A stretch of 64,000 bases of DNA from Styela clava. Taxonomy: Eukaryota. Below the pieces are notes generated by a model. It ran no database searches, was not told where the DNA came from, and saw only the letters and a program-made list of their open reading frames with translations. Of this stretch, positions 943 through 60,300 are shown piece after piece; position 1 is the first letter of the stretch, and every line of letters begins with the position of its first letter. The stretch is from contig NC_135250.1 of the NCBI RefSeq assembly GCF_964204865.1, forward strand, positions 27,838,001 through 27,902,000, read 5' to 3'. Position numbers and translations under genes: made by a program.

Positions 943-3900
943 CTACATGTTATAAAGCACGTTGTCTACCATTTTTCTTTCCAACTCAGCTTTTTTTGAA
1001 GTTTTTGCGTTTTTGTTGACCACGCTATACATATCTTCAATGTTTTTGGAGTTGTTTGTTCCATGTGTTTCCTCGTTCTCTTGATGCACCTCGTTCTCTT
1101 GCTGCGTTTCGTCCTCTTGCTGAGGTTCGTGTTGCGGACAAATTTTCGAGCTTGTAGATACTAACTTGCGATAATATGCCAGTTTACGGAGAAATCTTAA
1201 ACACAGAAGCTAAAGATAACGACCAGAGAAAAAAATCCGAATGAGTAGTAGCCTACTGGAGATTTGACAGTCGGTTGCATGAAAATATAGGCAGAATCTT
1301 GTATAATAATCTATGCTGAAAAATTGGCATGAACTAAATCAAACTTCCTACAATTTATAAAAAATAATTTTTTTTTCAAGTGTTCACTAATATTTTATAA
1401 ATTTATATTCAAATTACCTCAATGTTAGGATGATTATAAGGAGTATTGCTAAACCAAGCAAGATTCCCAGAACGATTATCAAAGTTAGAATATTCTTCGT
1501 TTTACAATTTCCACCATAACCTTTGGTTGTTTCTAGAACTTCTGCGGTCGTAGACAGTGATATTGAGGTTAAGCCATTTTGTGTATCATTCCCCAAGTTA
1601 TCAGATTCTGTTGCAGTCGGTCCATTCTCTGAATATTTTGTGTGGTAGATTGCGTTAGATGTGGTGGAAACAGTATTCCTTGTTGTAGTTTGTTTAATCC
1701 CTACAAATAAATACAATTTTGTTTTATTGGTGATTTAATTTGTTGCATTACTTCAATCAAGTTTGTTGAGGCTACTCAAATAGGTACAGTTCAACTTTTA
1801 TTACTGATTTATTTTATTTAATAAAGTTTGCTTTTTTGAAACAAAAATATCAGTAATAGAAAATTTAAGATGTCAGATCTGACGGAGTCTTTTGTGCTTC
1901 TTGCGTATTGGAATAAAACCCAAATATTTTCAGTTTTTATTGGTGTGAACTCTTTTTAAAACAAGTATGTGCATATATCAAGAAATCGCCTCTCAATTAA
2001 AAATTATTATAATAAATTATGGTATCAAATAATTAAAAATTAATTCGTATTCAATAAACTAAAATTACATTCCCTAATGCATAGGTTCTCAAAGTGCTCC
2101 GTACGGAGCCCCAGGGCACCGCGAGAGAAACCCAGGGGCTCCGCGAGCTATTCGATTACTTTTCAAAATAATAACTAGTTTTGTAACTGTTCAAAGAAGC
2201 AATAACAGCTTTGATAAAATTTGACAACAATATAGCATCGAAATATGGCAAAGAAGAGGAATTAAAAAATGACATTATTTATAAGCTGGAGCGCAGCCAG
2301 GATTCTCAAGAGGTGGGGATTTGAATCGGAAATTTCCGCGCAACATTCTTTGCGATTATAAAAAACGGATAACGAGATTTCTGTTGCGTAAAATGTATGG
2401 CCGATGCGAGCATTTAAAGGGTCTTGTCGTAATAATTCAATTGTACTCATAGTTACTCAAGTTTCATTCGAGATTTCTATTAGGATTACTAAAATGAAAG
2501 AATACTATTCTAAAATAACATAAAATACGTGATAAACTGCCAACTATAAATAAATTGGAGTCGTATTTTCGCGACCCTGGAATTTGTCAAACTTGATTTG
2601 TTCTTTTGCACTCGAGATTATTATTAAGCAAGATATCGCCGTTTAAAAAATCACAAGATCTGGGCCAAATACGATTGAAATTTATTTTAATGCATGCGGC
2701 TCCGTCGGTAGTTTCACAATAAAAAAAAGGTAATTCGCGCACACAATTAACTGTGTTCCGATTTCGCAGTTACTATACGGTGAATAACCAAAGAAAACCT
2801 AACATTACACCAAATTTTGTGATTTACAATGCCTATGAAAGCATTTTTAATCTGACGTGAGTCTTCTAAAACCAAACTTATATAGTGTGATCTTTTATTT
2901 TAAGTTTTAATATTTTAGAATGCATTTTTTCAATCAAGAAATTTGAGTTGCGGATTTACCTCTTTATTATTAATTATTATTTTTAGCATTTCGTCGCCGA
3001 TGACTATATATGGCAACATGTTTTTTACATTGAACTCATAGTTCCCCACGAGAACAAAAAAGCAATTATCGTCGCCATTGTGAAACAATACATGTATATG
3101 CCGAAGAAAATTTTTGATTTAGGGAGAATAAACACCGGCGTAAAGATGTTTAAAAACATGCCATGCTGACGAAAACTATCGGTGATTGTAACAAAATGCA
3201 ATCGCGCACGTTATCAGCGCCTTTTAAGTCTTCCGAAAATGTCAAAAGGGAAAAGATTCGACCCCTAGTTTATTAATATGTTTGTCAAGTGTCAAATTTA
3301 CAGCTTTAGTAAGAGTATATATAATTTAAATTTTGATTTATTTATGACTTGCATTAACCCATTAAAAAAGGTTTAGCATTTAATTTAGGTCAAGTACTTT
3401 TAACTTGCTCAGGAATATTTATCGGAAAGCTACAATTTTAACATTTCTTTTGGGGCTCCGCGCATATTAGTCAACCTTTTCAGGGGCTCCGCGACACCGA
3501 AAGTTTGAGAACCCTTGCCCTAATGTATAAGAGATTATTGACTAGTTGAGTATGCCAATGTACTGTATATTTAAAATAATGTATATACTTTGCTATTCTA
3601 CAAAATCGGCACATTATAATATTGTTGCAGCTCAGCAAGCATACATATTACTTCTTTGGGTAATATATGTTTACACTTTTGTATCTATGATATTTTCTAC
3701 TTCAGATTACTGCAGAATATAGTACGAAGGATTTAAGTTTAAAGAGACTAATTAAAATGGCTCATACGTAATGTGTTGCTTTTACCTGTGTTGTTTAATA
3801 TCCGGTATATTGACATTATGTTGAATTCCTGTAATTCAGAAGAGTAACCATCTCCTGTCTTATATGTTAAATTAATTGAAAAAACATTATCTCCAATGAT

Positions 3901-5338
3901 ATGACGGTATATCCCATTACATCCGTCATTAATAGATTCATCAGATATAGTTTTGAGGGAAAAAAGGAAACAGTCGTTGAGTTTGGAATGACACAGTTCT
4001 GTATCCACTAATCCAGCTGAAAAATAGTGATTAGTTGCAGCCTTTGCATTTTATTACCTCCTATAATTCACCATATACGGCACTAATATGAGTATCACGT
4101 CCTAATTTCACATATTATATCCGATATAATGGTTACCTACGTAGATATCTCGGCAAAAACAGCACAACTGAGACATTTGTAAATCTTAATTAACGCAACA
4201 GGAAATCATAAAGACAACTATTAAACTACTAAAAACTAGATAATATGCAACGTATAACACATAAACATGTTTCGAGAGAAATAACCACATGGTGAAATGA
4301 AATTACTAGTACACAAATTAATCGAAACAAGCCTTGAAGGCAGATATAAAACTCTGTTTTTATAATAAATAGAAGTTGTTTAATTGTTACAAATAAACAC
4401 AAAAAATATATTCCTCTTGATTACCAGTAATTTTCAGAGATCCAATGCACTGACTGTTTTGATTGAGAATATTTTTAGTAATCTTAACTAACAAGACGCT
4501 GTTAGCAGATATGCAACTATCGGCTTTTAATTCCCAAATAGTGTGAATATCCCATGCTTTTCTGAAAAATACAATTTAAAAATGACTATTTAAACTTTAT
4601 TTTCATGTTCAAATACGGCTGGATGATCATAAAATTTCATCATTTTTAAAAGTTCATCAAAATAAAGTTTTTCTATAATTTTCATTATTCTGTTGATTAT
4701 TATTCATGTTAAATTTTTTTTATTGGATTGAATGCTTCATTTGTATCAATTTTTATCAAAATTGAATAGAATAATAGAGAAATGTTTACGTTACACTTGC
4801 TATTGATACAGGTGTAGAACATAAATCAACGTTAGTCTGACCCAGACTAATAGATCGGTGAAGTATTGCTGCAACTATCGGTGAACAAGAAAAAATATTA
4901 GTTGCGTTTAATATTTTTCTTTAGAACTGACAAGTCGTAAATCCGCTCTAAGGGTTTGAGTTTCAAATACGCGAAATATTATTAAAGATGACTACTTTAA
5001 GTATACATAAAGTTAATATGCAAGTGTACATGTCAACTATTTTTTCCCAGTACTAATTGGTTGAATCCTTAAAAAAATGAAGTTATAAAACGTTGAAGTC
5101 ACGAATTTCTAAAAGACTCAAAACCGGGATGGAATTCCAAAATTCATATCACTCACTCTAAAAAGTTTCGGAATTATTTAAATTTGAACGAAGTATTTTA
5201 ACTCCACAACTTCATTCCCTATACATAGTGAAGTAAACAACACCTATCCGCTTATATACATTATTGAGAGTCACTAGTAGAAATGATATGAACAAATTAC
5301 TCACATATAAGTAACAAAACCCGCGCAAAGAAATGCAT
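943..5338 (-). CDS. Gene A: class I type I membrane receptor-like protein, ~350 aa, apparently intact
   Basis: Exons (minus strand) 5338-5305, 4874-4790, 4561-4425, 4101-4072 (candidate micro-exon), 4016-3786, 1700-1418, 1195-943. All introns GT-AG with matching phases; total 1053 nt with no internal stop. Signal peptide MHFFARVLLLIFAAILHRSIS; TM ILTLIIVLGILLGLAILLIIILTL; tail ...AYYRKL...DMYSVVNK...MVDNVLYNM*. Confidence 0.85.
2080..3517. mobile_element. Non-autonomous hAT-type DNA transposon in an intron of gene A
   Basis: Imperfect TIRs CATAGGTTCTCAAA / TTTGAGAACCCTTG; perfect 8-bp TSD CCCTAATG at 2072-2079 and 3518-3525. The empty site is seen in paralog D (about 22798). Confidence 0.9.
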
Positions 5339-8451: not shown

Positions 8452-11400
8452 TCAATATTCAATATCATGATAGGGGTGAAAATTTGTCGGCTCGTATTCA
8501 GATGATCCATCAGGTTGTTGCAATGAATCGCTCGTCAAGTATTTAATCTGGTGTCTTGGATCGGGATGATAAGTCATTGCAGAATGCTCATGACAAATAG
8601 GCAATTCGTATTCAGAAGTTTCGGTAGAGCTGGTTGTCTTTGATCGTTTAATAGTGTTGTTTTCGTAGATTCCGTGTTCACATTCAAACTGAGCTTTTGA
8701 TATATTTTTCATACTTGGTTTCTCATTATTCCGGATAGCAGTTGTATTCCTGTTGTTTTTCATCCTAAAATAATGAAAAAAGTATAGATTTCCAAGCTTC
8801 GGTCGTATCTCAATGTCATGCAGGTATAAATATTTCGGCGCCTAACCGTTGTAGATACAACAGTGATGCGAACATTTCGACAATGCTAACAAAAGCGAGT
8901 TCGACAATTAATGAATTTAATGTTACTTGGAATGATTTTGACCTACTACTACCGATCCCTGATGTCGTACTAACGACTCAACCACTTTTGAATCAGTTAA
9001 AAATAATACCTCTCTAACACAGTTTATATTATTCAAAATAGAAAATCCATTCCAAATCCAAAACTGCTATTTGGATATGTGATACGAATACCCATATGGA
9101 CATCTGAAGATTCCGAGAGTTGTTCCGGCAGATTCCGATAGTTTCCGTATTTGAAAACAATAGAAAATAAAATGGACGCTAGCTCTTTTAAATCAATGCC
9201 CTTGTCTGTGCAATGTTTATTAAACATCCAATAGTGATTTGAATCTTACTTGATAGTGATGACAATAATGATGATCACTGCAATAACGAGAAGAATGCCA
9301 AGTACAATAGTAGAGATGAAAAAGATTTTCTTTGTTTCTCTGCCAAGGTCGTCGCTACTTGTAGTTGGTTTTGTTATTTTCTCAACTCCAGTTTGTTCAA
9401 CCGACGCAGTTGTTGCTTCATTTGTGGGCAGGCGCGTGTTGCTTCCAGTAGTTGCAATTTGAACATCTTTATGAGCTTATTGAAAGTTTACATAATTCAA
9501 TACATCTAAATAATACCAATTATCATAACAAGCACAATTACAAGATTGACAGCATTGAAGTTTAAGAAATTAAAACCACACTAATTTTATTTTGTTCTAA
9601 TTTTTTTTTTTTAATATGTCGTCGATTTTGGTAAAGCCCAAAAATGTGTCAAGTTATTTTGTTTATAGGATATAAAAGCAATACCTATGTCGTGCTAACG
9701 AATAACCGCTCATAAGGACATAAGTATTCAGTTCGTTCTAAATTACAATAAATTCCTTGTTCCATTAGCGTATTTGTTTGCCCTTGTTTGCTGCATGTTT
9801 TCACATAGATTAAGGGAATGCGAAAATCTTGGAAATGATCATAGAAACCATCCTCTGTCTTATAGGTAATATTTATTCTAAATGCAAAGTCTTCAATGAT
9901 GATATGAGGAAATATTCTAGCACATCCGTCAGTAACAGAACCATTAGATACATTTTTGAAGAAAAAGGAAACAGTCGTTTGATTGGGAATTACGAAGTTC
10001 TGTTCTAATTTGATAAAAAATTTGCTATTTGCTATGCGGAGCATTTCATATAAATAGATTAATAAACATTGAATACAATACGAAGAACTTAAGTTGAAAA
10101 GACTAATTATATTCGCTCATACTTTGCTGCTTTCACCTGTGTTGTTTATGATCCGGTACATCAAATGGATTTTGTATTCTTGAATTTCATGAGAGTAACC
10201 ATTTCCTGTCTTATATGTCAAACTAATTGGAAAAATATTATCTTCAATGATATGCTGGTATATCCCATTACATCCGTCAGTAATAGATTTATCAGATACA
10301 GTTTTTGGGGCAAAAAGAAAACAGTCGCTGAGTTTGGAAGCACATAATTCTGTATCAACCAATCCAGCTGAAAAATAGTGATGAATTGGCGCCCTTACAT
10401 TATAGTACATGATAATACCTCCTATAATTTACCATATACGTCACTAATATGAGTACCAGGTCCTACTGTCACATATTATATCCGATATATTGGTTACCTA
10501 CTTAGAGATCTCGGCAAAAAAACGCATATCCCTAGTAACTGCGTTTTTTTTAAGTAAAGTGATACATTCTATTACTCTTTATATGGTGAATGGTGGTTAC
10601 ATTATCGCATGTAATTTTGAGGTAAATTATTTATTTTTGCGAAGCATAACTGACACCAACACATCTGTAATTCCTAATTACCGCAACAGCAGACAACTAT
10701 TCATAGGGATAACTATTATAAACTAGATAAGTAGTGCATTTATGCAACGTATAACACATAAACATGTTTTGAGAGAAATACCCCCTTGATGAAATAAAAT
10801 TACCAGGGCACAAATTAATTGAAACAAGCCTTAAAGGCGGATACAAAACTATATTTTTATAACAAATAAAAGTTGTTTAATTGTTACGGATAAACAAAAA
10901 AAAAATGTATTCACTTTGATTACCAGTAATTTTTAGAGATCCAATGCACTGACTGTTTTGATTGAGATTATTTTCAATAATTTTAACTAACATGACGCTG
11001 TTAACAGATATGCAACTATCGGCTTCTAATTCCCAAATATTGTGAATATCCCCTGCTCTTCTGAAAAATACAATTTAAACTTAATTTTCATGTTCATATA
11101 CGGCTGGATGATCATGAAATTTCATTTCATCATTTTTAAAAAGTTTATTAAAATAAATTTTTTTTATATTTTACATCATTCTGTTGATTGTTATTGAAGT
11201 TAAAAATTTTTTATTGAATTGGATGCTTTATTTGTATCAATTTTTATTATAATTTAACCAAAAAAAATTAAGAAATGTTTACTTTACGTTTGCTCCCACT
11301 TCAGGTGTTGTACATAAATCATAGTTAATCTGGTTCTGACCAATAGATTGGTGAAGTATTGCTGCCAATATAGATGAACAAAAAAGAATATTAGTTTTGT

Positions 11401-21944: not shown

Positions 21945-24725
21945 TCAGCGTTTTTTTGAAGTTTTTTCGTTTTTGTTTACCACGCTATACATATCTTCAA
22001 TGTTTTCGGAGTTGTTTGATTCCTGGGCCTCGTCGTTCTCTTGCTGCACTTCGTTTTCTTGCCGCGGTTCAGATTCCAGAGAGGTTGTTGACAATAATTG
22101 ACGATAGTTTGCCAGTTTGCGATAAAATCTGAAACACATATGATAGTGATAACGAAGAGCTTAGAAAAATAAGAACGAGTTGTACTACTGTTTGGACTTC
22201 AATATTTTGCTTGAAAGCGGTTCAAAAGTGTGAACTGAACTATACTTCCTACCATTTATAAAAGGGTCATTTACCAAGTTACTACAATTTCCTTAAAAGA
22301 ATTCAGCGCTACATGTAAAAACTTGAGACTGGAACCATGCAGAATTGGTAAAAAATCAAGAATTGCAGATTACCTCAATGTTAGGGTGATTATGAGAGGT
22401 ACTGCTGAACCAAGCAAGACTGCTAGAACAATTATCAAAATTGAATTATCCTTTGTATTACACTTTCCATCATAACCGTTGGAATCCCTCATTGTTGCCG
22501 AATTCGGAACTGAGGTTATATCACTCTGTGTATTGTTCATCAAATAACCAGAATGAGTTTCCGTCGGTTCATTCTCTGAATATGTTGTGTGATAGTTAGA
22601 TGTGGTGGGAACGCTATTACTTTCTGTAGGTTGTTGAAGTTCTACAAATAGGTACAGTTCACTTATTATTGGCGGGAACCCTTTTTAAATCCAAGCGTAT
22701 ATATTCAAACTCGCCCCTCAATTAAAGATTTCTATAAGAAATTATGGTATCAAATATTTGAAAAGTGCGTTTGTTTCGTTAAAACTAAAATTACATTCCC
22801 TAATGTTTGAGAGATTATTGACTAGTTGAGTATGCCAATGTACTACATATTTACAATAATGTATATACTGTACTATTCTACAGAATTAGCATATTATAAT
22901 ATCGTTGCAGCTCAGCAAGCATACAAATTTCTTCGAGTAATATATGATTACACTTTTTGCAGTTATATTATTTTCTACTTCAGATTACTGCTGAAGACAA
23001 TACGAAGAACTTAAGTTGAAATAGAATAATTCAATTCGCTTATACTTAATTTGTTGCTTTTACCTGTGTTGTTTAATATCCGGTATATTGACAGTATGTT
23101 GAATTCTTGTAATTCAGAAGAGTAACCATCTCCTGTCTTATATGTTAAATTAATTAAAAAAACATTATCTCCAATGATATGACGGTATATTTTATTACAA
23201 CCGTCAGTAACAGATTCATCAGATACAGTTTTTGAGGCGAAAAGGAAACAGTCGTTGAGTTTGGAATCACACAGTTCTGTATCCACTAATCCAGCTGAAA
23301 CATGGTGATTAGTTGGTGCCTTTACATGATAATACCTCCTATAATTTATCATATACGACACTAATGTGAGTATCGGGTCCTGATTTTACATATTATATCC
23401 GATATATTGGTTACCTACGTGGAGATCTCGACAAAAAAACTGCAAATACCAAATATATATTTTTTTAAACAAACAAAGTGGTACATTCTATCAGTGTTTA
23501 TATGGTGAATGGCGGGAACATTATCGCTTGTAATTTTGAGAGAAATTGTTTATTGTTGGGAAGTTTGAAATACATATCTGAGAATAACAAAATTCCCAAT
23601 TCCCAATTAACGCAACAGAAGATGATAAAGACAACTATTAAAAACTAGATGAGTAGTGCATTTATGCAACGTATATAACACATAAACATGTTTCGAGGGA
23701 AATAATGTGTGAATAACGTGATGAAATAAAATGACTAAGACACAAGATAATCGAAACAAGCTTTGGAGGCGGATACAAAACTATATTTTTATAATAACTA
23801 AAAGTTGTGTGATTGTTTCAAATAAACACGAAAAATGTATTCATATTGATTACCAGTAATTTTCAGAGATCCAATGCACTGACTGTTTTGAGTGAGATTA
23901 GTTTTAATAATTTTAACTAACAAGACGCTGTTAACATATGTGCAGCGATCGCTTTTCATTTCCCAAATACTGTGAATGTCCCCTGTTCTTCTGAAAAATA
24001 CAATTTAAAAATGACTATTTATTCTTTATTTTTATGTTCATATACGGCTGCATGATCATGGAATTTCATTTCATCATTTTTAAAAGTTTATCAAAATAAA
24101 ATTTTTTACTCTATTTCACATCATTCTGTTGATTATTATTCATGTTAAAATGATTTTTTATTGGATTGGATGCTTTAATTGTATCAATTTTTATCAAAAC
24201 TTAATAAAAAAAAAGAGAAATATTTTACCTTACACTTGCTCTTGATACAGGTGTAGAACATAAATCAACGTTAAACTGACTCAGACCGATAGATTGGTGA
24301 AGTATTGCTGCCACTATAGGTGAACAAGAAAAGATTATTTGCGTTCAATATTTTTCTTCAGAACTGACGAGTCATGAATCCGCTCTAAGGGTTTGAGTTT
24401 CAAACACACGATATAGTATTGAAGTTGACTTCGTTAGGTATACGTAGTTATATCCTTGTTTAAAAAAAGTTATAAAACGTTGAAGTGCCAAATTTTTGAA
24501 AGACTGAAACCCTGAATGGATTTCTAGAATTCATATCACTCACTCTAAAAGTTTCGAAATCATTAAAATTTGAATAAGTCATTTTAGCTCAACAAATTCA
24601 TTTCCTATACGTAGTGAAGTAAACAACACCTATCCACTTATATACATTATTGAGAGTCACTAATGAAAAATGATACGAAGTAATTACTCACCTATAATTA
24701 ACAATACCCGTGCGAAGAGATGCAT
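21945..24725 (-). CDS. Gene D: class I receptor with shortened tail
   Basis: Exons 24725-24692, 24313-24229, 23990-23854, 23294-23064, 22641-22374, 22128-21945; micro-exon donor is mutated. A +1 A in a homopolymer ends the tail at ...YSVVNKNEKTSKKR*; the ancestral stop is at 21902. Confidence 0.75.
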
Positions 24726-31346: not shown

Positions 31347-32812
31347 CTACATATTGTAAAGCACGTTGTTTACCATTTCTTTCTCCGACTCAGCATTTTT
31401 TCATTAAGTTTTTGTGTTTTTGTTGACGACACCATACATAGCTTCAATGTTTTCGGGGTTGTTTGCTTCTTGTGCCTCTTCTTTCTTTTGCTGGACTTCG
31501 TTCTCTTGCTTAATTTCGTTCTCTTGTTGAATTTCGTTCTCTTGCTGCACTTCGTTATCTTGCTGCGCTGCCATCTCTTGCTGTGGTTCAGATTCAAGAG
31601 ACATTTTCGAGGTTGTAGACAATAATTGACGATAGAGTGTCAGTTTGCAATAAAATCTGAAACACATATGGCAGAGATACCAAGAGCTTAAAAAAATAAG
31701 AACAAGTTGTACTACTGTTTAGACTATCGTTGATATCAATCTTTTGCTTGAAATTGATTTAAGAGTCTTTTATACTCACACACTTGAAATTTGTCTTGTA
31801 TGATTGATATGAACTGAGCTATACTTCCTACAATTTATAAATGGTTATTCGCCAAGTTATTACAATTTTTCAAAAGAAGTTAGCGCTATTTGTAAAGACT
31901 TGAGGCTAGAACCATACAGAATTAAAAAAAAATCGAATGACGGCACTGTAATTTTTTATGCAAATTACCTCAATGTTAGGATGATTATAATGAGTACTCC
32001 TAAACAAAGCAAGACTGCCAGAAAAATAATCAAAGTATATATCTTTTGTTTTACAATATCCATCATGACCGTTGAGTGTTTCTAAATCTTCTTTATCCGT
32101 AGCCAGTGGAATTAAGGTTATGTCATTTTGTGTATTGTTCAACAAATAACCAGGTTGAGTAGCAGTCGATCCATTCTCTGAATTTGTTGTGTGATAGTTA
32201 GATGTGGTGGTTACACTATTCCTTGCTGTAGTTTAGGTACAGTTCAGTTTTTATTGGTGGTATCTCTTTTTAAATTCAAGTATGTGCATATATCAAAAAT
32301 CGCCTCTCAATTAAAGATTTTTTTACGAAATTAGGATATCAAATATTTGAAAATTTTCATTTAAAAAGCGCGTTTGTCTCGTTTTGAATAAACTAAAATC
32401 ACATTACCTGATGTTTAAGAAATTATTGACTAGTTGAGTATGCCAATGTACTGTTTATTCAAAATAATGTATATACTGTGCTATTCTAGAGAATTGGCCA
32501 TTATAATAAAACTCGGCTAGCATACAAATTACTTATTTAAGTAATATATGTTTACACTTTTTGCAGCTATAGTATTTCTACTTCAGAATACTGCAGAATA
32601 TAATACGAAGAAATTAAGTTGAAAGAGAATAATTCAATTCGGTTATTTCTGATTTGTTGCTTTTACCTGTGTTGTTTATTATCCCGTACATTAACTTGAT
32701 GTTGAATATTTGTAATTCAGAAGAATAACCAACCCCTGTCTTGTATGTCAAATTAATAGGAAAACCTTTATCTCCAATGATATGATGGTATATCCCATTA
32801 CATCCGCCAGTA
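31347..32812 (-). pseudogene. Gene E: 5'-truncated class I pseudogene
   Basis: Tail exon 31656-31347 has a premature TAA at 31404. Stalk/TM exon (ending 31969) has a 2-nt frameshift and a deleted acceptor. Only the 3' part of exon A (32812-32667) remains before a deletion junction. Confidence 0.85.
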
Positions 32813-32822
32813 CATCCGCGTT

Positions 32823-33024
32823 CACCGGAACGTAGTATGTTGATCAGGTTAGGGTTAGGCCATAATTTCAGATACAAATACTACGGGTGTCACTTGGCTA
32901 GTCTCAGAACTCATAATAACACTAAAATAGGGAAAATTGGAATAAAATTATGACTTAACCCTAACCTGGTACACATACTATGTTCAGGTGTCCGCCATAT
33001 TGTTGCACATACTACAGGAGACCA
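32823..33024. mobile_element. Left-truncated copy of the 8012 MITE
   Basis: Begins at CACCGGAACGTAGTATG at the deletion junction; right TIR is intact. Confidence 0.8.
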
Positions 33025-33227: not shown

Positions 33228-36200
33228 TCAATATTCAATATCATGATACGGGTGGAAATTTGTCGGTTCGTATCCAGATGATCCATCAGATTGTTGCAAT
33301 GAATCACTCGTCAAGTATTTATTCTGATGCCTTGGATCGGGATGAGAAGTCATTGGCGAATGCTCGTGACAAATAGGCAATTCGTATCCAGAAGTTTCGG
33401 TAGAGCTGGTCGTCTTTGATTGTTTAATAGTGTTGTTTTCCTAGATTCCGTGTTCACATTCAAACTGAGCTTTTGATATATTTTTCATACTCGGTTTCAT
33501 ATTCGTCTGGGTAGAAGTTGTATTTCTGTTGTTTTTCATCCTAAAATTAAAAAAATGGATGGATTTTTAAGCTACGGTAGTATCTCAATTTCTTTCAGGT
33601 CTAACTATTTTGGCGTCTGAGCCTTGGAGATACAACAGTGATGCAAACATTTTAAAAATGTAAACGGAAGCAACGAAGACAATAGAGGAATTTGATGTCT
33701 TTTGATACCTGGAATGATTTTGACCTACTGCTACCGATCTCTGTCGTCGTACTAACGACCTAACCATTTTTGAATCCGCCAAAGATAATTACTCTTCAAC
33801 ATAGTTGATATTGATCTGAATAGAAAATCCAGTTTTTAAAAAATTCAATGCCGCTATGTAATACCAATAATCATATGAACATAAGAAAGCGGACAGAATC
33901 CGAGAGGTTTACGTGTCTGTGCAAAGTTTATTTAACATCCAATAGTGATTTGAACCTTACCTAATAGCAAGGACAATAATGATGATCACTGCAATAACGA
34001 GAATAATGCCAAGTACAATAGTAGAGATGAAAAAGAATTTCTCAGTTTCTCTGCCAAAGTCGTCGCTACTTGTAGCTGGTTTTGTTATTTTCTCAACTAC
34101 AGTTTGTTCAAGCGTCGAAGATGTTGCTTCATTTGTGAGCAAGTACCTGTTGTCTTCAGTAGTTGCATTTTTATCATCTTTTTGAGCTTAAAAATTTATA
34201 TAATCCACTATATTCAAATATTAACAATCATTACAACATTCACAATTCCGATATTGACAGCATTAAAGTTTAGGAGATAAAAACAACACGAATTTCCGTT
34301 TTAATTTTGTTCTAATTTATTGTTTCCCTAAAATCTGTCGTTGAAATTGGTAAATCCCAAAAATCTGTCTAGTCATTTTTTTAAATTTTATAAAAGCAAC
34401 AACTGAGTCGTTCTAATGAATGACCGCCCATAAGGCCATAACTATCCAGCTCGATCCAAATTACAACAAAATTCCATGTTTATCATTGTCGTATTTGTTT
34501 TACCTTTGCTGCTTGTTTTTACATAAATTAGGGGAATGCGAAATGAACATAGCGTCACGCTAATAACCAAATTGAGTAAGTCATTTTTAGCAGTTTTGAG
34601 AAAAACGTAAAAAACTTCCCAATGATATTGTTATGACATTGAGAGTCAATAATTTGCCATGGTTCAATTTTTTTATCGTAGCCAGATTTGAGTTAATTTG
34701 TATGACGCACTTACGTGACGTCATAATGGCGCACTGTGACTTAGGCAGAAATGTGTCTATGAGGTGTAAAAAGCATTTTAAGCTACGGAAAATTGCTATC
34801 TATGATACAGAAAAATGATTTGATTTTTTCACATTTCAAAAGGGGGGGGGGGTTCGACCCGCGAAACCATCCCCCTGGCTACGCCACTGGGGATATACGC
34901 AATTTTGCAACTTGACTATATGCAGCTGTCCTGAAAACCAAACATTCCAAAACCGAATCTAATTCTCAGTATCTACGATGTATAATCCCCAAAATAGCTA
35001 ATCTGTTTCAATTACATTATTTTTTATGTTTAAAAATATATATTTCATCAATATAACACGCCCTGGACACCCACCAAAATAAGACTAAAATTAAATATAA
35101 AGAATAAAACAGCAATGCACCCAATATAAAAGCCAACCAAGGTGAACTGGGTTCGGACAATACTTCGCCGGGGTTATTTTGCCTCTGTGACGTCACAATG
35201 GTCCCGCGGTAACAATGATAATTCATTATGACAAAATAATTGCTCAAATGTGCATGTCATACCAAATCTCCATTTTCATGGGTTTCGGAATTCTTAAAAT
35301 AAAATCTGAGTTAACAGACAGGTGCGCAGCATTACATAAATGCCTATTTTATAAAAAAAAAATATAAAAAAAAAACTCAAAATCGCTAAAAATGACTTAC
35401 GCAATTTGGTTATTAGCCTGACGATAGAAACCATTCTTTGTCTTATAAGTAACATTCATTGTAAATATATTGCGTTCGAAGATATGAGGAAATATCATTG
35501 CACATCCGTCGGTAAGAGAATCATTGGATACATTTTTTGAAGTAAAAGGGAAACAGTTGTTTTGTTGGGAATCACAAAGTTCTGTGCTAATTCGATAAAA
35601 AAATTTGCTATTCGCTATACGGAGCATTTTATATAAATAGATTGATAAACATCGAATACAATACGAAAAACTTAAGTTGAAGGACACTAATTATTTTCGC
35701 TTATACTTAATTTGTTACTTTTATCTGTGTTGTTTATTATCCGGTGTATTAACTTGATTTTAAGTTCTTGAAGTTCATGAGAGTAACCATTTCCTATCTT
35801 ATATGTCAAACTAATTGGAAAAATATTATCTTCGATGATATGCTGGTATGTCCCACTACATCCGTCAGTAATAGATTCATCAGATACAGTTTTTGTGGCA
35901 AAAAGGAAACAGTCGTTGAGTTTGGAAGCACATAGTTCTGTATCAACTAATCCAGCTGAAAAAATAGTGATGAATTGGCGCCCTTACATTATAGTACATG
36001 ATAATACCTCCTATAATTTACCATATACGTCACTAATATGAGTATCAAGTCCTAATTTCACATATTATATCCGATATATTGGTTATCTACTTAGAGATCT
36101 CGGCAAAAAAACGCATATTCCTAGTATCGGCCATTTTATTAAACAAATAAAGTGATACATTCTATGAATGGTGGGAACATTATCGCATGTAATTTGAGGG

Positions 36201-37417
36201 AAATTATTTATTTTCGCGAAATTTAAAATACATAACTGAGACATCTCATTTGTGATTCCTAATTATCGCAACAGGAGATCATAATACAACTATTAAACTA
36301 ATAAAAATCAGATAAGTAGAGAATTTATGGTACGTATAACACATAAACATGTTTCGACAGAACTAAACACATGATGAAATGAAATTACTAGGACACAAAT
36401 TAATCGAAACAATCCTTGAAAGCGGATACAAAATTATATTTTATAATAAATAGAAGTTGTTTGATTGTTACAAACGAACACGAAAAATGAATTCACTTTA
36501 ATTACCAGTAATTTTCAGAGATCCGATGCATTGACTGTTTTGATTGAGATTATTTTTGGTAATTTTAACTAACAAGACGCTGTTAACAGATGTGCAACTA
36601 TCGGTTTTTAATTCCCAAATATTGTGAATATCCCCTGTTCTTCTGAAAAATACAATTCGAAAATGAATATTTAAACTATATTTTCATGCTCACATACGGC
36701 TGGATAATCATGAAATTTCATTTCATCATTTTTAAAACTTTATCAAAATAAAATTTTCCTATATTTTACATCATTCTGTTGAATATTATTCATGATAAAA
36801 TGATCTTTTATTTAATTTGATGCTTTATTTGTATTAATTTTTATCAGAATTTAATCAAATAAATAGAGAAATGTTTACTTTACACTTGCGCTTGATACAG
36901 GTGTAGAACATAAATCAATGTTAATCTGGTTCTGACCAATAGATTGTTGAAGTATTGCTGCCACTATAGATGAACAAGAAAGAATATTAGTTATGTTGAA
37001 TATTTTTCCTCAGAACCGACCAGTAATAAATCCGCTTAATGGGTTTGAGTTTAAAATACGCGTCATACTATTAAAGATGACTCCGTCAAGTATGCGAGCA
37101 GTTATATGCAAGTGCAGATGTCAATTATCTCACTTAGTACTAATTAGTTATATACTTGTTAAAAAAGTCAAGTTATAAAACGTTGAAGTTCGATTTTCTC
37201 AAAACCTCGATGGATTTCTAGAATTCATATCATTCACTCTAAAAAGTTTTGGATTTATTCAAATTTGAATGAAGCACTTCTCCACAAATTCATTCACTGT
37301 ACGTAGTGAAGTAAATAAAACATATCCACTTATATACATTATTGAGAGTCACTAATGAAAAATGATTCGAACTAATTACTCACCTATAAATAACAATACC
37401 CGCGCGAAGAGATGCAT
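33228..37417 (-). CDS. Gene F: class II receptor with tyrosine-free truncated tail (or recent pseudogene)
   Basis: Exons 37417-37384, 36963-36879, 36642-36506, 36051-36022, 35955-35725 (donor GT>AT, new in-frame GT 6 nt further), [A' disrupted by a transposon], 34186-33961, 33540-33228. TAC>TAG at 33441-33443 turns IYENN into I*. Confidence 0.55.
34553..35423. mobile_element. 871-bp TIR DNA transposon with 4-bp TSD inserted in exon A' of gene F
   Basis: ~48-bp TIR CGTCA(C/G)GCTAATAACCAAATTG.GTAAGTCATTTTTAGC; TSD ATAG at 34549-34552 and 35424-35427. Contains a hAT-like terminus (CCTGGCTACGCCACTG) ending at 34889. Confidence 0.85.
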
Positions 37418-45501: not shown

Positions 45502-48500
45502 CTACATATTATAAAGCACGTTGTCTACCATTTCTTTTTCTGACTTGGTGTTTTTGGAATTTTTCGCGTTTTTGTTGACGACGCTATACATATTTTCAAT
45601 GTTTTTAGAGTTGTTTGATTCTTGGGTCTCGTCGTCCTCTTGCTGCATTTCGCTCGGTTGCTGCACTTCGTTTTTTTGCTGCACTTCGTTCCCTTGTTGC
45701 ACTTCGCTATCCAGCTGCGCTTCCATCTCTTGCTGCGGTTCAGATTCCGGAGATAATTTCGAGGTTGTAGACAATAATTGACGATAGTTTGCCATTTTGC
45801 GATAAAATCTGCAACATAAATGGCAGAGATAACGAAGAGCTTAAAGACGCACGAACGAGTGGTACTACTATTTATACTAACGTTGATATCAATATTTTGC
45901 TTCAAAGTGGTTCAAAAGTCGTGTATACTTCACACACTTGAAATTTATCTTGTATGATTGGTATGAACTGAGCTATACTTCCTACAATTTATAAATGGTT
46001 ATTTAACAAGTTATTACAATTTTTCAAACGAATTTAGCGCCATTTGTAAAAAATTGAGGCTGGACCATACATAATTGAAAACAAAAAATCGAAGGATGGC
46101 GCTATAATTTTTTATGCAAATTACCTCAATGTTAGGATGATTATGATGAGTACTCCTAAACAAAGCAAGACTGCCAGAACAATAATCAAAGTTGGATTAT
46201 CTTTTGTTTTACAATTTTCACCATCTCCTGCATCCGTAGACAGTAGGATTAAGGTTATGTCATTTTGTGTATTGTTTATCGAATAACCAGGTTGAGTTGC
46301 AATCCGCCCATTTTCTGAATATGTTGTATGATAGTTAGATGTGGTGGGAACACTATTCCTTGCTGTAGTTTGTTGATGTTCTACAAATAAGTACAGTCCA
46401 GTTTTTATTGCTGGTAACTCTTTTTAAATTCAAGTATGTGCATATATCAAAAATCGCGTCACAATTAAAGATTTTTATAAGAAATTATGGTATCAAATAT
46501 TTGAAAATTCTCTTTTAAAAAGCGCGTTTGTTTCGTTTTCAATTAACTAAAATTACATTCTCTAATGTTAAACAGATCATTGACTAGATGAGTATGGCAA
46601 TGTACTGTATATTTAAAAAATGTATATACTTTACTATTCTACAGAATTGGCACATTATAATATTGTTGAAGCTCAGCAAGCATACATATTACTTTTTTTA
46701 GTAATATATGCTTACACTTTTTGCAGTTATATTATTTTCTACTTCAGATTACTGCAGAATACAATACGAAGAACTTAAGTTGAAAGAGACTAATTTAATT
46801 CGCTCATACTTAACTTGTTGCTTTTACCTGTGTTGTTTAATATCCGGTATATTAACAGGATTTTGAATTCTTGAAGTTCATGAGAGTAACCATTCCCTGT
46901 CTTATATGTCAAAATAATTGAAAAAATATTGTCTCCAATAATATGATGGTGCATCCCCCCACATCCGTCAGTAATAGCTTCCTCAGATACAGTTTTTGAG
47001 GCGAAAATAAAACAGTCGTTGAGTTTGGAATCACACAGTTCTGTATCCACTAATCCATCTGAAACATAGTGATTAGTTGGTGCCTTTACATGATAATACC
47101 TCCTATAATTTACCATATACGGTACTAATATGAGTATCGGGTCCTGATTTTACATATTAAATCCGATATATTGGTTACCTATACGTACAAATCTCGACTG
47201 AAAAACAGCATATCCCAAATATTTTTCGTTTTAAAAAAATATATAATGTGAAACATTTTATTACAGTTTATATGGTGAATGGCGGGAACATTATCGCTTG
47301 TAATTTTAAGGATAAATTGTTTATTGTTGTGAAGTTGGGAATACATATCTGATCACAACACAACTGTAATTCCCAATTAACGCAACAGAAGATGATAAAT
47401 ACAACTATTTAAAACTAGATGAGTAGTGCATTTATGTAACGTATATAACACATAAACATGTTTCGAGAGAAATAACCACATGATGAAATAAAATTACTGG
47501 GACACAGGTTAATCGAAACAAGCCTTGAAGACGATACAAAACTATATTTTTATAATAAATAAAAGTTGTTTGATTGTTACAAATAAACACGAAAAATGTT
47601 TTCATATTGATTACCAGTAATTTTCAGAGATCCAATGCACTGACTGTTTTGAGTGAGATTATTTTTTGTAATTTTAACTAACAAGACGCTGTTAACAGAT
47701 ATGCAACTATCGGCTTTTAATTCCCAAATACTTTGAGTATACCCTTTTCTTCTGAAAAATACAATTTAAAAAAGGACTATTTAAACTATATTTTCATGTT
47801 CATATACGGCTGGATGATCATGAAATTTCATTTCATAATTTTTAATAGTTTACCAAAATAAAATGTTTCCATATTTTTCATCATTCTGTTAATTATTATT
47901 CATGTTAAAATGATTTTTTATTGGAGAGGATGCTTTAATTGTATCATTTTTTATCAGAATTTAATAAAATAAAAATAGACAAATGTTTACTTTACAGTTG
48001 CTCCTGATATAGGGGTAGAACATAAATCAACATTAATCTGGTCCTGACCAATAGATTGGTGAAGTATTGCTGCCACTATGGGTGAACAAGAAAGAATATT
48101 AGTTTTGAATATTTTTCCTCAGAACCGACAAGTCATAAATCCGCTCTGGGGGTTTGAGTTTCAAATACACGTCATATTATTGAAGATGACTTCTTTAAGT
48201 ATACGAACAGTTATATGCAGTGCAAATGTCAACTATCTCACTTAGTACTAATTAGTTATATATTTGGTAAAAAAGTCAAGTTATAAAACGTTGAAGTTCC
48301 GATTTTCTCAAAACCTCGATGAAATTCTCGAATTCATATCACTCACTCTAAAAAGTTTCGGAATTATTCAAATTTGAATGAGGCAATTTAACTCAAAAAA
48401 TTCATTGAATGTAAGTAGTGAAGTAAACATCACCTATCCACTTACATTATTGAGAGTCACTAATAAAAAATGTTATGATCAAATTACTCACCTATAAGTA

Positions 48501-51313: not shown

Positions 51314-54300
51314 TCAATATTTAATATCATGATACGGAAGGAAGTTTGTCGGTTCGTATTCAGATGATCTATCAGGTTGTTGCAATGAATCGCTCGTCAA
51401 GTATTTAATCTGATGCCTTGAATCGGGATGAGAAGTCATTGCAGAATGCTCGTGACAGATAGGCAATTCGTAACCAGAAGTTTCGGTAGAGCTGGTTGTC
51501 TTTGATTGTTTAATAGTGTTGTTTTCGTAGATTCAGTGTTCACATTCAAACTGAGCTTTTGTTATATTTTTGATATTCGGTTTCATATTCTTCGGGCTTG
51601 TAGTTGTATTCCTGTTGTTTTTCATCCTAAAATTAAAAAAAAAATGTATGGATTTTCAAGCTTCGGTAGCATCTCAATTTCTTGCAGGTCTAACTATTTT
51701 GGCGCCTGAGTCTTGGAGATACAACAGTGATGCAAACATTTTACAAATGCAAACGGAGTCAACCAAGAAAATAAAGGAATTTGATGGCTTTTGATACCTG
51801 GAATGATTTTGACCTATTGCTGCCGATATCTGTCGTCGTATTAACGTTTCAACCACTTTTGAATCCACCAAAGATAATTACTCTTCAACTTAGTTGATAT
51901 TGATCTAAATAGAAAATCAATTTAAAAAAAAATTCAATTCCGATATGTAATACCAATAATCATATGAACATAAGAAAGCGGACAGAGACCGAGAGATTTA
52001 CGTGTCTGTCAAAAGTTTATTTAACATCCATTAGTGATTTGAACCTTACCTAATAGCGAGGACAATAATGATGATCACTGCAATAACGAGAATAATGCAA
52101 AGTACAAGAGTAGAGATGAAAAAGAATTTCTCAGTTTCTCTGCCAAAGTCGTCGCTACTTGTAGCTGGTTTTGTTATTTTCTCAACTACAGTTTGTTCAA
52201 TCGGCGAAGTTGTTGCTTCATTTGTGAGAAAGTACCTGTTGTCTTCAGTAGTTGCATTTTTATCATCTTTAGAAGCTTAAAAATTTATATAATTCACAAT
52301 ATTTATATAATAACAATCATTACAAAATTCACAATTTCGATATTGCTAGCATTAAAGTTTGGAAAAAAAATATCATACTAATTTTAATTTTTATTTTGTT
52401 TTGATTAATTTTTTTTTCTTAAAATATGTCTGATGTTAGTTAAGCCAAAAAATGTGTCGAGTCATTTTGTTTATAATATATAAAAGCAATAACTACGTCA
52501 TGCTAACGAATGACCACTCATGAGGCCATAACTATTCAGTTCGATCTAAATCACAACAAATTCCATGTTTATCTTTAGCTTATTTTTTACCTTGCTGCTT
52601 GTTTTCGCTTAAACAGGGGAAATGCGAAAAACTTGGAAATGATCATAGAAACCATACTCTGTCCTTTAAGTAATATTTATTGTAAATATATTGCCTTCAA
52701 TGATATGAGGAATTATCTTAGCACATCTATCGGTAATAGACTCATTAATCACATATTTGGAGTAAAAAGGAAACAGTAGTTTGGTTGGGAATCACAAAAT
52801 TCTCTGCTGATAGAATAAATCAAATTTCCCATTTGCTATATGAAGCATTTTATACAAATAGATTGATAAACATTGAATACAATACGAAGTACTTAGGTTT
52901 AAGGAGACTTATAAATTCGCTTATACCTAATTTGTTGCTTTTACCTTTGTTGTTTAATATCCGGTAATCCGGTATATTGACTGGAAGTTGAATTGTTGAA
53001 ATTCAGAAGAGTAACCATCTCCTGTTCTATATGACAAATTAATTGGAAAAATATTAACTCCAATGATATGCTGGTATATCCTATTATACCGTCAGTAATA
53101 GATTCTTCAGATACAGTTTTTGAGGTAAAAAGGAAACAGTCGTTGAGTTTGGAATCACACAGTTCTTTATCCACTAATCCAGCTGTGACATATTGATCAA
53201 TTGATGCCTTTATATGATAATACATGATAATACCTCGTATAATTTACCATATATGGCACTAATGTGATTATCGGGTCCTAATTTTACACATTATAACCGA
53301 TATATTGATTACCTACGTAGAGAACAGCATATCTCAAGTATCTTTCATTTTTATAAACAAATGAAGTGAAACATTATATGACTGCTTATATGGTGAATGG
53401 CGGGAACAATATTGCTTGTAATTTTGAAGGAAATAAAGTATTTTTGCGAAATTTGAAATACGTAACTGAGACTAACACATTTGTAATTCCCAATTACCTC
53501 AAAATAAGATGATAAAGACAACTATTAAAAACTAGATAAGGAGTGAAATTATGCAACGTTTAACACATGAACATGTTTCGAGGAAAATAACCACGCAATA
53601 AATTGAAATTACAAGGATACAAATTAATCGAAACAAGCCTTGAAGACGGATACAAAACTATATTTGTATAATAAATAAAAGTTGTTTATTTGTTACAAAT
53701 AAACACAAAAAATGTATTCACTTTAATAACCAGTAATTTCAGAGATCCAATGCACTGACTGTTTTGATTGAGATCATTTTTAGTAATTTTGACTAACGTG
53801 ACGCCGTCAACAGATGTGCAACTATCGGCTTTTAATTCCCAAATACTGTGAATATCCCCTCTTCTTCTGAAAAATACAATTTGAAAATGACTATTTGAAC
53901 TATATTTTCATGTTCATATATGGCTGGATAATCATGCAATTTCATTTCTTCATTTTTAAAAATTTATCAAAATAAATTAAGCCCATATTTTACATCATTC
54001 TGTTGATTATTATTTATGTTAAAATTATTTTTTATTGGATTGGATGCTTTATTTGTATCAATTTTTATCAAAACTTAATAAAAAAATAGAGAAATATTTT
54101 ACCTTATCATTGAGCCTGATTCATGTGTAGAACATAAATCAACGTTAATAGTACTCAGACCAATAGATTGGTGAAGAATTGCTGCCACTATAGGAGAACA
54201 AGAAGGAATATTAGTTGCGTTGAATATTTTTTCTCAGACCAACAAGTCATAAATCCGATCTTAGGGTTTGAGTTTAAAATACGGGGTTTAAGCTTTTTTT

Positions 54301-57316: not shown

Positions 57317-60300
57317 TCAATATTCGATATCATGATACGGGTGGAAATTTGTCGGCTCGTATTCAGATGATTTATCAGGTTGTTGCAATGAATCGCTCGT
57401 CAAGTATTTAATCTGAAGCCCTGGATCGGGATGAGAAGTCATTGTAGAATGCTCGTGACAAATAGGCAATTCGTATCCAGAAGTTTCGGTAGAGCTGGTT
57501 GTCTTTGATTGTTTAATAGTGTTGTTTTCGTAGATTCCGTGTTCACATTCAAACTGAGCTTTTGTTATATTTTTGATACTCGGTTTCATATTCTTCGGGG
57601 TAGTAGTTGTATTCCTGTTGTTTTTCATCCTAAAATTTAAAAAAATGTATGGATTTTCAAGCTTCGGTATTATCTCAATTTCTTGCAGGTCTAACTATTT
57701 TGGCGCCTGAACCTTGGAGATACAACAGTGATGCAAACATTTTAAAAATGCAAACGGAAGCAACCAAGACAATTAAGGAATTTGATGTTATTTGATACTT
57801 GGAATGATTTTGACCTACTGCTATCGATCCCTGCTGTCGTACTAACGACCCAACCACTTTTGAATCCGCCAAAGATAATTACTCTCCAACATAGTTGATA
57901 TTGATCTAAATAGTAAATCCAGTTTTTAAAAAATTCAATGCCGATATGTAATACCAATAATCATATGAACATAAGAAAGCAGGCAGAGTCCGAGAGTTGT
58001 ACGTGTCTGTGCAAAGTTTATTTTACATCCAATAGTGATTTGAACCTTACCTGATAGCAAGGACAATAATGATGATCACTGCAATAACGAGAAGAATGCC
58101 AAGTACAAGAGTAGAGATGAAAAAGAATTTCTCAGTTTCTCTGCCAAAGTCGTCGCTACTTGTAGCTGGTTTTGTTATTTTCCCAACTACAGTTTGTTCA
58201 ATCGGCGAAGTTGTTGCTTCATTTGTGAGAAAGTACCTGTTGTCTTCAGTAGTTGCATTTTTATCATCTTTGGGAGCTTAAAAATTTATAAAATTCACTA
58301 TATTTAAATAATAACAATCATTACAACATTCACAATTCTAACATTGTTAGCATTAAAGTTGGGGAAATAAAATCCATACTAATTTTAATTTTAATTTTGT
58401 TTTAATCAATTTTTTTTCTTAAAATATGTCGGATATTAGTAAAGCCTAAAAATACATCAAGTTATTTTGTTTATATTATATAAAAACAATAACTAAGTCA
58501 TGCTATCGAATGACCATCCATGAGGCCATAAATATTCAGTTCGATCTAAATCCCAATAAATTCCATGTTTATCATTGGCGTATTTTTTTTACTTTGTTGC
58601 TTGTTTTCGCGTAAACAGAGGAAATGCGAAAAACTTGGGAATGATCATAGAAACCATCCTCTGTCTTATAAGTATTATTTATTGTAAATATATTGCCTTC
58701 AATGATATGAGGAAATAACCTAGCACATCTATCGGTAATACATTTTTTAATCACATTTTTTGGAGTAAAAGAGAAACAGTCGTTCGGTTGGGAATCACAA
58801 AATTCTGAGCTGATAGAATAAAACAAACATGCTGTTTGCTATGCAAAGCATTTTATACAAATAGATTGATAAACATTGAATACAATAAGAAGAACTAAGG
58901 TTGAAAGAGACTTATTAAATTCCCTTATATTACTTATATTGTTGCTTTTACCTGTGTTTAATATCCTGTATATTGACTGGATGTTTAATTCTTGTAATTC
59001 AGAAGAGTAACCATCTCCTGTCTTGTATGTTAAATTAATTGGAAAAATATTATCTCCAGTGATGTGACTTTGTATTCCATTACATCCGTCAGTAATCGAT
59101 TCATCAGGTACAGTTTTTGTGGCGAAAAGGAAACAGTCGTTGAGTTTGGAATCACACATTTCTGTATCCACTAATCCAGCTAAAACATAGTGATAAGTTG
59201 GTGCCATTACATGATAAAACCTCCTAAAATTTACCAAATACGGTACTAATGTGAGTATCGGGTCCTAATTTCACATATTATATCCGATATATTAGTTACC
59301 TACGTGGAGATCAAGACAAGAAACAGCATATCCCAAGTAACTTTCGTTTGATAAACAAATGAAGTGATACATTCTATCACTGTTTATATGGTGAATGGCG
59401 GGAACAATATTGCTTGTAATTTTCAGGGAAATTATTTATTTTTGCTAAATTTGAAATACATAACTGGGACTAACCCATTTGTAATTCCACATTATCGCGA
59501 CAGGAGATCATAAAGACAACTATTAAACTAATAAAAATCAGATAAGTAGAGAATTTATGCTACGTATAACACATAAACATGTTTCGACAGAACTAACCAC
59601 ATCATGAAATGAAATTACTAGGACACAAATTAATCGAAACAAGCCTTGAAAGCGGATACAAAACTATATTTTTAAAATAAATAGAAGTTGTTTAATTTTT
59701 ACAAATAAACACGAAAAATGTATTCACTTTAATTACCAGTAATTTTCAGAGATCCGATGCACTGACTGTTTTGATTGAGATTATTTTTAGTAATTTTAAC
59801 TAACAAGACGCTGTTAACAGATGTGCAACTATCTGTTTTTAATTCCCAAATAGTGTGAATATCCCCTGCTCTTCTGAAAAATACAATTTAAAAATGACTA
59901 TTTAAACTATATTTTCATGTTCATATACGGCTCGATGATCATGAAATTTCATTTCATCATTTTTAAAAAGTTTATCAAAATGAAAATTTTCTCATATTTT
60001 ACATCATTCTGTTGATTATTATTCATGTTGAAATTATTTTTCATTGTATTGGATGCTTTATTTGTATCAATTTTTTTTGAATTTAATCAAAGGATATAAA
60101 AATGTTTACCTTACACTTGCTCGAAGTTCGGGTTTGGAACATAAATCAACATTAAACTGACTCAGACCGATAACTTGGTGAAGTATTGCTGTCACTATCG
60201 GTGAACAAAAATGAAGATTAGTTACGTTGAAAAATTTTTCTCGGAACTGACGAGCCGTAAATTTGCTTTGAGGGGTTTGAGTTTCAAATACGCGATATAT

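Follow-up and report, generated by a model that had tools for sequence, protein, structure and literature searches.

The AT-rich stretch of the Styela clava genome analysed here (the window: 64,000 nucleotides, C1:27838001-27902000, GC about 0.30-0.38) carries on its minus strand, at 5338-943, an intact six-exon gene whose product is a predicted type I membrane protein. The gene belongs to a clustered family restricted to the Styela clava lineage, and we propose, with a probability of roughly 0.7, that its product is a receptor-like protein in which a CUB-type head is joined by a Ser/Thr-rich stalk and a transmembrane helix to a cytoplasmic tail bearing tyrosine motifs. A divergent CUB-like fold of the ectodomain is supported by predicted structures of the paralogues of this gene, while sequence comparison with known CUB domains finds nothing, and it is between these two kinds of evidence that the proposal has to be weighed.

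A six-exon gene for a predicted type I membrane protein

The exons of this gene, which we call the 4k copy, total 1020 bases or 340 codons, and all six (E1 to E6, Table 1) are open, with matching phases and GT/AG signals. The sequence-only reading of the window had placed an ectodomain at 3786-4874, and these positions prove to be exon boundaries, 4874 being the first base of E2 and 3786 the last base of E4 on the minus strand. E1 lies outside that interval; it agrees with the N-termini of two database proteins, P0001 and P0005, and counterparts of it were found by motif upstream of the gene for P0001 (L010) and, at 62989, upstream of another window copy. E2, which translates as ..AAILHRSISLGQTNVDLCSTPVSIASV, is covered by a tblastn match of P0005 residues 11-32 to 4878-4813. 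It is entered in phase 1 and leaves two bases of a split codon, to which E3 gives one.

The two halves of the ectodomain are encoded by E3, translated KAWDIHTIWELKADSCISANSVLLVKITKNILNQNSQCIGSLKIT, and E4, translated GLVDTELCHSKLNDCFLFSLKTISDESINDGCNGIYRHIIGDNVFSINLTYKTGDGYSSELQEFNIMSIYRILNNT, which are 79.6% identical to P0001 residues 40-88 and 74.1% identical to P0001 residues 90-170, respectively. Their junction takes one base from the end of E3 and two from E4. The motifs that had been picked out by eye are present in these exons, except that the 4k copy reads ELCHS, with ELCDS being the family consensus. E5 is matched by P0001 residues 182-237 (tblastn). The block from E2 to E4 is in phase 1 at both ends and lies between the signal peptide and the transmembrane helix, which places the domain outside the cell. 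The exon order of the window gene is found contiguous in the database proteins P0001, P0003, P0004, P0009 and P0011, and the source of P0004 is a 965-base contig with the ectodomain uninterrupted, that is, a spliced homologue.

A predicted CUB-like jelly-roll fold for the ectodomain

The sequence-only reading had likened the ectodomain to a highly divergent CUB domain, proposing a predicted structure and a structural search as the check. That check was run on P0001, a natural paralogue 74-80% identical to the window exons, in place of the window protein. AlphaFold2 (AF2) was given a 36-row alignment that had been checked by eye, most rows being exon fragments of one genome. Alignments A7 and A9 hold six of the 32 divergent E3 fragments listed and 24 of the 32 E4 fragments, and exclude P0005, with its truncated E4, and the near-duplicates P0002 and P0010; alignments A5 and A6 were dropped because short E3 fragments were misplaced in them.

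In the resulting model the ectodomain is all-beta, with ten strands between residues 24 and 161 and means of the predicted local distance difference test (pLDDT) of 65-91 over blocks of ten residues. The stalk falls under 50 and appears disordered, and the transmembrane segment is helical. E3 corresponds to model strands 46-52, 61-70 and 80-85, and E4 to strands 91-95, 103-108, 123-128, 136-142 and 150-161. The five P0001 models have mean pLDDT values of 58-69.

CUB domains rank first among the structural neighbours of this model. An exhaustive VIA-align search of 48,161 chains gave 20 at Z of at least 8, the best (Z 9.8) being Kremen1, and CUB entries make up 21 of the best 25 rows, with SID1/SIDT ectodomains as the other four. 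The CUB rows, at Z 8-9.8, align over 102-116 residues with a root-mean-square deviation of 2.4-3.2 Å. They include Kremen1, cubilin, Gpr126, enteropeptidase, neuropilins, TSG-6, C1s, MASP, spermadhesin, PCPE-1 and meteorin; the aligned ranges of Kremen1, Gpr126, enteropeptidase and TMPRSS6 we take to be their CUB domains, and most of the titles name CUB. When the top 993 chains from Foldseek were re-ranked, CUB filled 41 of the 47 top rows, and the best template modelling scores (TM-scores) by target in Foldseek were those of the TSG-6 CUB domain (0.64) and meteorin (0.59). One other candidate, the C-terminal domain of Clostridium perfringens enterotoxin, had the best Foldseek E-values but low TM-scores by target (0.43-0.48), the top ones belonging to CUB rows, and we set it aside.

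Two further members of the family point the same way. A second AF2 model, of P0004 (about 30% identical to P0001), has CUB in its top five rows and in 17 of 25. The ESM Atlas, whose look-alikes are independent of the AF2 models, returned CUB as the three best named clusters for P0011 (0.90-0.91; 22 of 30 matches in that set), and five of the ten structure rows for this protein carry CUB, with TM-scores of 0.58-0.63. For P0001 itself the nearest named Atlas clusters are CUB and CUB_2, at 0.81-0.84, weaker than for P0011. Ig and FN3 titles are absent from the best 50 rows of each VIA-align search (P0001 and P0004), and the one Ig-like entry in the Foldseek list stands at rank 33 with a TM-score by target of 0.31. 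There is, in short, a beta-sandwich in the model and no confident match to Ig or FN3. On these predicted models, the ectodomain is a ten-strand jelly roll nearest in three dimensions to solved CUB domains. This is a likeness of fold, from which we infer homology with CUB.

Six conserved cysteines and the added segment

The claim that six ectodomain cysteines are conserved across copies holds throughout the window. Cys 1, encoded in E2 by the bases GATTTATGT (D-L-C), is unchanged in all seven copies; Cys 2 and Cys 3, in E3, are likewise invariant in seven of seven; and Cys 4 to Cys 6 are all present in the six full-length copies of E4. Five cysteines are invariant in the database family proteins, the sixth being absent only from P0005, in whose model the last part of E4 is missing. 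The P0005 model, a class II RefSeq model of a gene outside the window, leaves E4 after ..ITDG and joins the stalk directly, and would lose the last three strands of the domain; either alternative splicing or an error in the prediction would account for it.

Canonical CUB domains (PF00431; found in spermadhesins, C1r/C1s/MASP, neuropilin a1/a2, cubilin, Kremen1 and TSG-6) have four cysteines and about 110 residues, whereas the family ectodomain has six and about 138, of which the 102-116 aligned above can be matched to CUBs. The cysteine number and the length of the domain are consistent with an insertion of the kind that the sequence-only reading had described as an extra disulfide loop, and the three disulfides are putative. 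Both measured spacings are CUB-like: 26 residues separate Cys 1 from Cys 2, as in the one Styela CUB read, and 16-19 separate Cys 3 from Cys 4, which flank strands 5 and 6. The family shares with CUB, in addition to this cysteine pair and the predicted ten-strand jelly roll, a third-strand Trp that is conserved and a coding block that begins and ends in phase 1. Inspection of the family by eye shows no clear equivalents of the acidic residues at the Ca2+ site of many CUBs.

A further cysteine lies outside the domain. Class I stalks (window E5, P0001 and P0003) have one conserved membrane-proximal Cys (..G-N-C..) right before the transmembrane helix, and the class II stalks read are without it. 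With such a residue, class I proteins alone might form disulfide-linked dimers.

Sequence-level signal and competing explanations

Several results, including two on tail motifs and transcripts that are given in the next section, weigh against the proposed protein. The most direct come from sequence comparison, where neither Pfam CUB models nor the CUB domains of the genome itself recognise the family. At E <= 10, none of five exon peptides and none of six family proteins has a match in the CUB clan of Pfam; the exon peptides match no Pfam model at all, the six proteins have no ectodomain Pfam match of any kind, and the five that carry names are all called 'uncharacterized protein'. PF00431 used as a positive control gives 137 CUB matches in the Styela clava genome, none of them within C1:27.58-27.95 Mb. 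In hhalign, the family alignment (A7), compared with 15 CUB domains taken from the Styela clava genome (A8), reaches a probability of 0.1% and E = 0.56 over 50 columns, so that the parallel with the CUB consensus that had been drawn by eye is not above chance as sequence; what stands of it is the fold, by structure prediction only. A sequence profile search of the PDB matches the stalk and transmembrane region only. Its best match, CD166 (E = 0.014), covers profile positions 164-262, which are stalk and transmembrane segment rather than ectodomain, and was discarded.

The order of residues and the phase of an intron also differ from those of CUB. The conserved Trp of the family precedes Cys 2, while in the alignment of 15 Styela CUBs it comes after Cys 2. 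The intron within the family domain is in phase 1, seven residues after Cys 3; two of two Styela CUB genes have one in phase 0, six residues after Cys 3. The two intron positions are one codon apart and the phases differ.

The structural evidence has weak points of its own. With the P0001 model, Foldseek finds no match in the PDB at E <= 0.001. The best VIA-align Z of 9.8 is just about 2 above the stated background of that program (7-8), in which rows within one unit count as tied, and the SID1/SIDT sandwiches, at Z 8.0-8.9, are tied with many CUB rows, followed by GOLD domains at 7.4-7.8. The P0004 model is poor, with an ectodomain pLDDT of about 36-81, residues 16-44 under 50 and a best Z of 5.9, and the models rest on a shallow alignment drawn almost wholly from a single species.

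These points feed two competing explanations. The first is that the predicted fold is itself unreliable, misled by the shallow alignment, and that the real domain is of another kind, perhaps small and Ig-like or otherwise Cys-rich. An alignment made mostly of exon fragments from one genome, the modest mean pLDDT of the five models and the low-confidence stretch of the second target all speak for it. We nevertheless regard it as very unlikely, since AF2 models of two targets only about 30% identical share their top neighbours, the Atlas ESM model of a third member has CUB-bearing neighbours as well, the ectodomain blocks of the P0001 model average 65-91, and Ig-like or FN3 neighbours are nearly absent from the rows listed. 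The way in which conserved sites alternate with variable ones along the last strand, described below, would also suit a real beta-strand of a sandwich.

The second explanation accepts the fold and disputes its origin: the ectodomain may be a generic small jelly roll, related to the SID1 ectodomain or GOLD or invented in this lineage, that has converged on the CUB topology. The zero sequence signal for CUB, the unlike Trp-Cys order and cysteine number, and the difference in intron phase from the two CUB genes of the same genome speak for convergence, as does the narrow structural margin, with SID1/SIDT within one unit of most CUB rows, GOLD close behind, and the enterotoxin C-domain and PliG at about 7.2-7.3. 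Against this stand the predominance of CUB in both rankings (21 of 25 and 41 of 47 best rows) and at the top ranks in two models, and the language-model look-ups, which use no structure and name CUB first for two members less than 30% identical to each other. In the sequence, Cys 3 and Cys 4 flank a pair of strands at a distance like that seen in the C..YD..FCG disulfide of CUB, and phase 1 at both ends of E2-E4 is typical of shuffled extracellular modules. The genome, with its 137 matches, is also rich in CUB modules. On balance we consider convergence unlikely, though the more serious of the two challenges, and favour a head of the CUB type.

Two cytoplasmic tails on one ectodomain type

The seven copies in the window fall into two tail classes, with three genes of class I and four of class II as neighbours in a tandem cluster. 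Class I tails (copies 4k, 24k and 47k) carry YSVV or YSVI and a C-terminal LYNM; class II tails (11k, 36k, 53k and 59k) carry YENN, YELP or YEIP, YEPT and YHDIEY. Ectodomain identity barely tracks tail class, at a mean of 81 versus 79% for E3 and 79 versus 76% for E4. Clustered genes with similar ectodomains and different cytoplasmic ends are the layout of paired receptors, and to this extent the earlier suggestion of a paired-receptor system is borne out. The canonical opposing motifs are another matter: patterns of immunoreceptor tyrosine-based inhibitory, switch and activation motifs (ITIM, ITSM and ITAM) occur in none of the seven tails, and none of the transmembrane segments read has a charged residue, so that the pairing of an ITIM with an ITAM partner that marks such receptors fails here. 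The resemblance to paired receptors is one of layout only.

Selection on the ectodomain appears patchy. In crude pairwise comparisons among 18-21 paralogues, which gene conversion and dead copies may distort, the ratio of nonsynonymous to synonymous substitution (dN/dS) is 0.12-0.34 in residues 70-100 (the core), 1.1-2.0 in residues 40-69 and 1.17 in residues 151-160, with an overall value of 0.6-1.0. In the last of these segments the most variable positions are interleaved with conserved hydrophobic residues, like the outer face of a strand.

Contigs of four sequencing runs that we guessed to be RNA show none on the exons of the 4k gene, and such contigs can show presence but not absence. Many short contigs of the same runs cover the repeat at 1957-3617, with 90-99% likeness. 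This element lies in the long intron between E4 and E5; the corresponding intron of the 24k copy is far shorter, its E4 and E5 matches lying about 420 bases apart.

The missing contigs bear on a third explanation, that the array is mostly decaying DNA and that the 4k copy yields no functional protein. The overall dN/dS is high enough to agree with it, none of the nine database proteins tried reaches 85% identity to the window copies over its exons, and some copies are indeed broken, namely the E4 of the 53k gene, a copy at 32.8k of which only part is left and the relic exons described below. Yet the six exons of the 4k copy are open with matching splice signals and phases, the six cysteines and the core are conserved, RefSeq models exist for paralogues, and a spliced homologue is present on the 965-base contig. 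Decay of the 4k gene is in our view highly improbable, and we retain the reading of an intact gene for a membrane protein.

A clustered family restricted to Styela clava

The profile of E4 searched against 1.84 billion representative proteins gives eight matches at E <= 0.001, six of which are genuine family members: five are titled 'uncharacterized protein [Styela clava]', and the sixth is P0004, from the unnamed 965-base contig. Repeat proteins with no relation to the family, a He_PIG protein and a kinase, account for the remaining two. A word-based homologue search finds P0004 alone when queried with P0004, and P0001 and P0005 alone when queried with P0001. In the Styela clava genome, the same E4 profile has 50 exon matches, 47 of them at C1:27.585-27.950 Mb and three on C6. 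The window itself holds seven copies of E3, all at E <= 2e-18, and six full copies of E4 together with one partial and one frame-broken copy (Table 1). Each of the nine database proteins tried falls short of 85% identity to the window across its exons; among the full models P0001 comes closest to the window gene, at the identities given above.

Table 1. Exons of the 4k gene and other features of the window (positions in the window)
Feature	Position	Strand	Description
E1	5305..5338	-	ATG and first 11 signal-peptide codons (MHFFARVLLLI) plus 1 base; GTGAGT donor
E2	4790..4874	-	end of signal peptide and start of mature domain, Cys 1; ..NVDLCSTPVSIASV
E3	4425..4561	-	N-terminal half of CUB-like domain (IWELKA.., LLVKITKN.., QCIGSLKIT); Cys 2, Cys 3; ends in phase 1
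E4	3786..4016	-	C-terminal half of CUB-like domain (GLVDTELC.., NDCFLF.., DGC.., VFSINLTYKTGDG, EFNIMSIYRI); Cys 4-6; phase 1 at both ends
E5	1418..1700	-	Ser/Thr-rich stalk (..GYGGNCKTKN, one membrane-proximal Cys) and transmembrane helix (ILTLIIVLGILLGLAILLIIILTL); open frame, splice signals
E6	943..1195	-	class I cytoplasmic tail (..IEDMYSVVNKN..VDNVLYNM) and stop codon
Repetitive element, about 1.6 kb	1957..3617		in long E4-E5 intron, non-coding for protein
11k paralogue, class II tail	10138..11062	-	E3 10925-11062, E4 10138-10371
24k paralogue, class I tail	23065..23992	-	E3 23855-23992, E4 23065-23298
Partial E4 of truncated class I copy	32668..32826	-	last 53 codons only
36k paralogue, class II tail	35726..36644	-	E3 36507-36644, E4 35726-35959
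47k paralogue, class I tail	46829..47753	-	E3 47616-47753, E4 46829-47062
53k paralogue, class II tail	52966..53868	-	E3 53734-53868; E4 in two frames, 53186-53049 and 53085-52966
59k paralogue, class II tail	58953..59875	-	E3 59738-59875, E4 58953-59183

The E4 of the 53k gene is split over two frames, through either a frameshift or an assembly error, in what is otherwise a complete class II gene. The four class II genes of the window, and only these, have a second, divergent exon for the C-terminal half, 140-350 bases downstream of E4 (9805-10009, 35427-35591, 52612-52811 and 58596-58814, all on the minus strand). These exons share 42-49% identity with E4, but 52-54% with the E4 of the class II gene for P0009 (L025). 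Three are broken, one by a frameshift, one by an in-frame stop and a frameshift and one by divergence at its 3' end. The remaining one has an open frame, but its donor would be out of phase. The second exon has the look of a remnant of the class II exon that originally stood there, with a class I-like E4 now in its place.

Beyond the window, a plus-strand sub-cluster at C1:27.585-27.620 Mb (L026-L028 and L034-L038) has ectodomains 42-60% identical to the main type, and the gene for P0003, which lies in it, has a tail that mixes class I and class II. A second and more divergent cluster occupies C6:18.26-18.45 Mb (L031-L033), where the intron between the domain halves is very short and one or two extra cysteines are found; its members P0008 and P0011 are 24-28% identical to P0001.

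Discussion

We suggest that these genes encode surface receptors with a diversifying head and an output through tyrosine phosphorylation, because the proteins have type I topology, two tails occur on the same ectodomain type, and dN/dS is patchy. The head would be a ten-strand jelly-roll beta-sandwich with six cysteines and about 25-35 residues beyond the canonical CUB, lifted above the membrane by the disordered, Ser/Thr-rich stalk, and would serve to bind a ligand. Its surface may vary fast between copies, in the region of strands 2-4 and at alternate residues of the last strand, over conserved core residues 70-100. Binding might then be reported inside the cell via tyrosine phosphorylation of one or the other of the two unrelated tails. 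We read the family as a lineage-restricted new use of a known fold, and its function is a guess.

Single-pass CUB proteins with tyrosine-bearing tails are known, among them CDCP1, DCBLD2/ESDN, the neuropilins and NETO1/2, all of them single or few-copy, conserved and multi-domain. The family resembles these proteins in its type I topology, CUB-type head and inner tyrosine motifs, and the CDCP1 CUB family (PF23665) is among the Atlas look-alike clusters; it differs in having one small domain, a mucin-like stalk, a tandem array of dozens of genes in one lineage, and two tails. Vertebrate paired receptors such as KIR, LILR, Ly49 and SIRP form tandem clusters in which near-identical ectodomains are joined to two cytoplasmic ends. 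The family shares with them the cluster, the common ectodomains and the patchy fast evolution, and differs from them in its CUB-like head and in lacking a canonical ITIM or, in the transmembrane segments read, a charged residue.

A closer comparison in terms of phylogeny is with Botryllus, which belongs to the same ascidian family, Styelidae. Styela clava is solitary, and colony fusion does not apply to it. The Fester and FcoR genes of Botryllus schlosseri, as described in the text of PMC12582321, encode clustered, fast-diversifying membrane receptors with tyrosine motifs in their tails, exon-level recombination and, within the scope of that text, no homologues outside close relatives. Their ectodomains are Ig-like and Sushi, FF has three transmembrane helices, and FcoR tails carry canonical ITIMs or hemITAMs (PMC12582321). 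Set beside these receptors as that text presents them, the Styela family has one CUB-like domain, one transmembrane helix and no canonical ITIM or ITAM. Our literature search found no description of the family or of a CUB-based paired receptor, the supplements of PMC12582321, which perhaps contain styelid homologues, lying outside that search.

It is conceivable that a solitary styelid has built its own system for recognizing non-self, gametes or microbes on a CUB-derived head, with the tail classes as a signalling pair in which class II (YENN, YELP, YEPT) acts as a LAT-like scaffold, in parallel to the invention of the Ig/Sushi Fester and FcoR receptors in Botryllus. LAT and SLP-76 are reported, in the text of PMC12582321, to be lacking in the lineage. 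This is speculation, and we hold it to be doubtful in its present form.

Invertebrates have repeatedly built families of recognition receptors on different domains, but for tunicates other than Botryllus few such families are on record. The present one escapes standard domain annotation entirely. If the proposal is true, the fold that complement proteases, neuropilins and spermadhesins are known for would have been cut down to a single head that can no longer be recognized from its sequence, and copied into a cluster of dozens of receptors whose two tyrosine tails are interchangeable. The family would then allow ideas on the origin of receptor repertoires to be tested, with exon-level exchange, the swapping of tails, and diversification of the surface over a fixed disulfide core as the processes at work.

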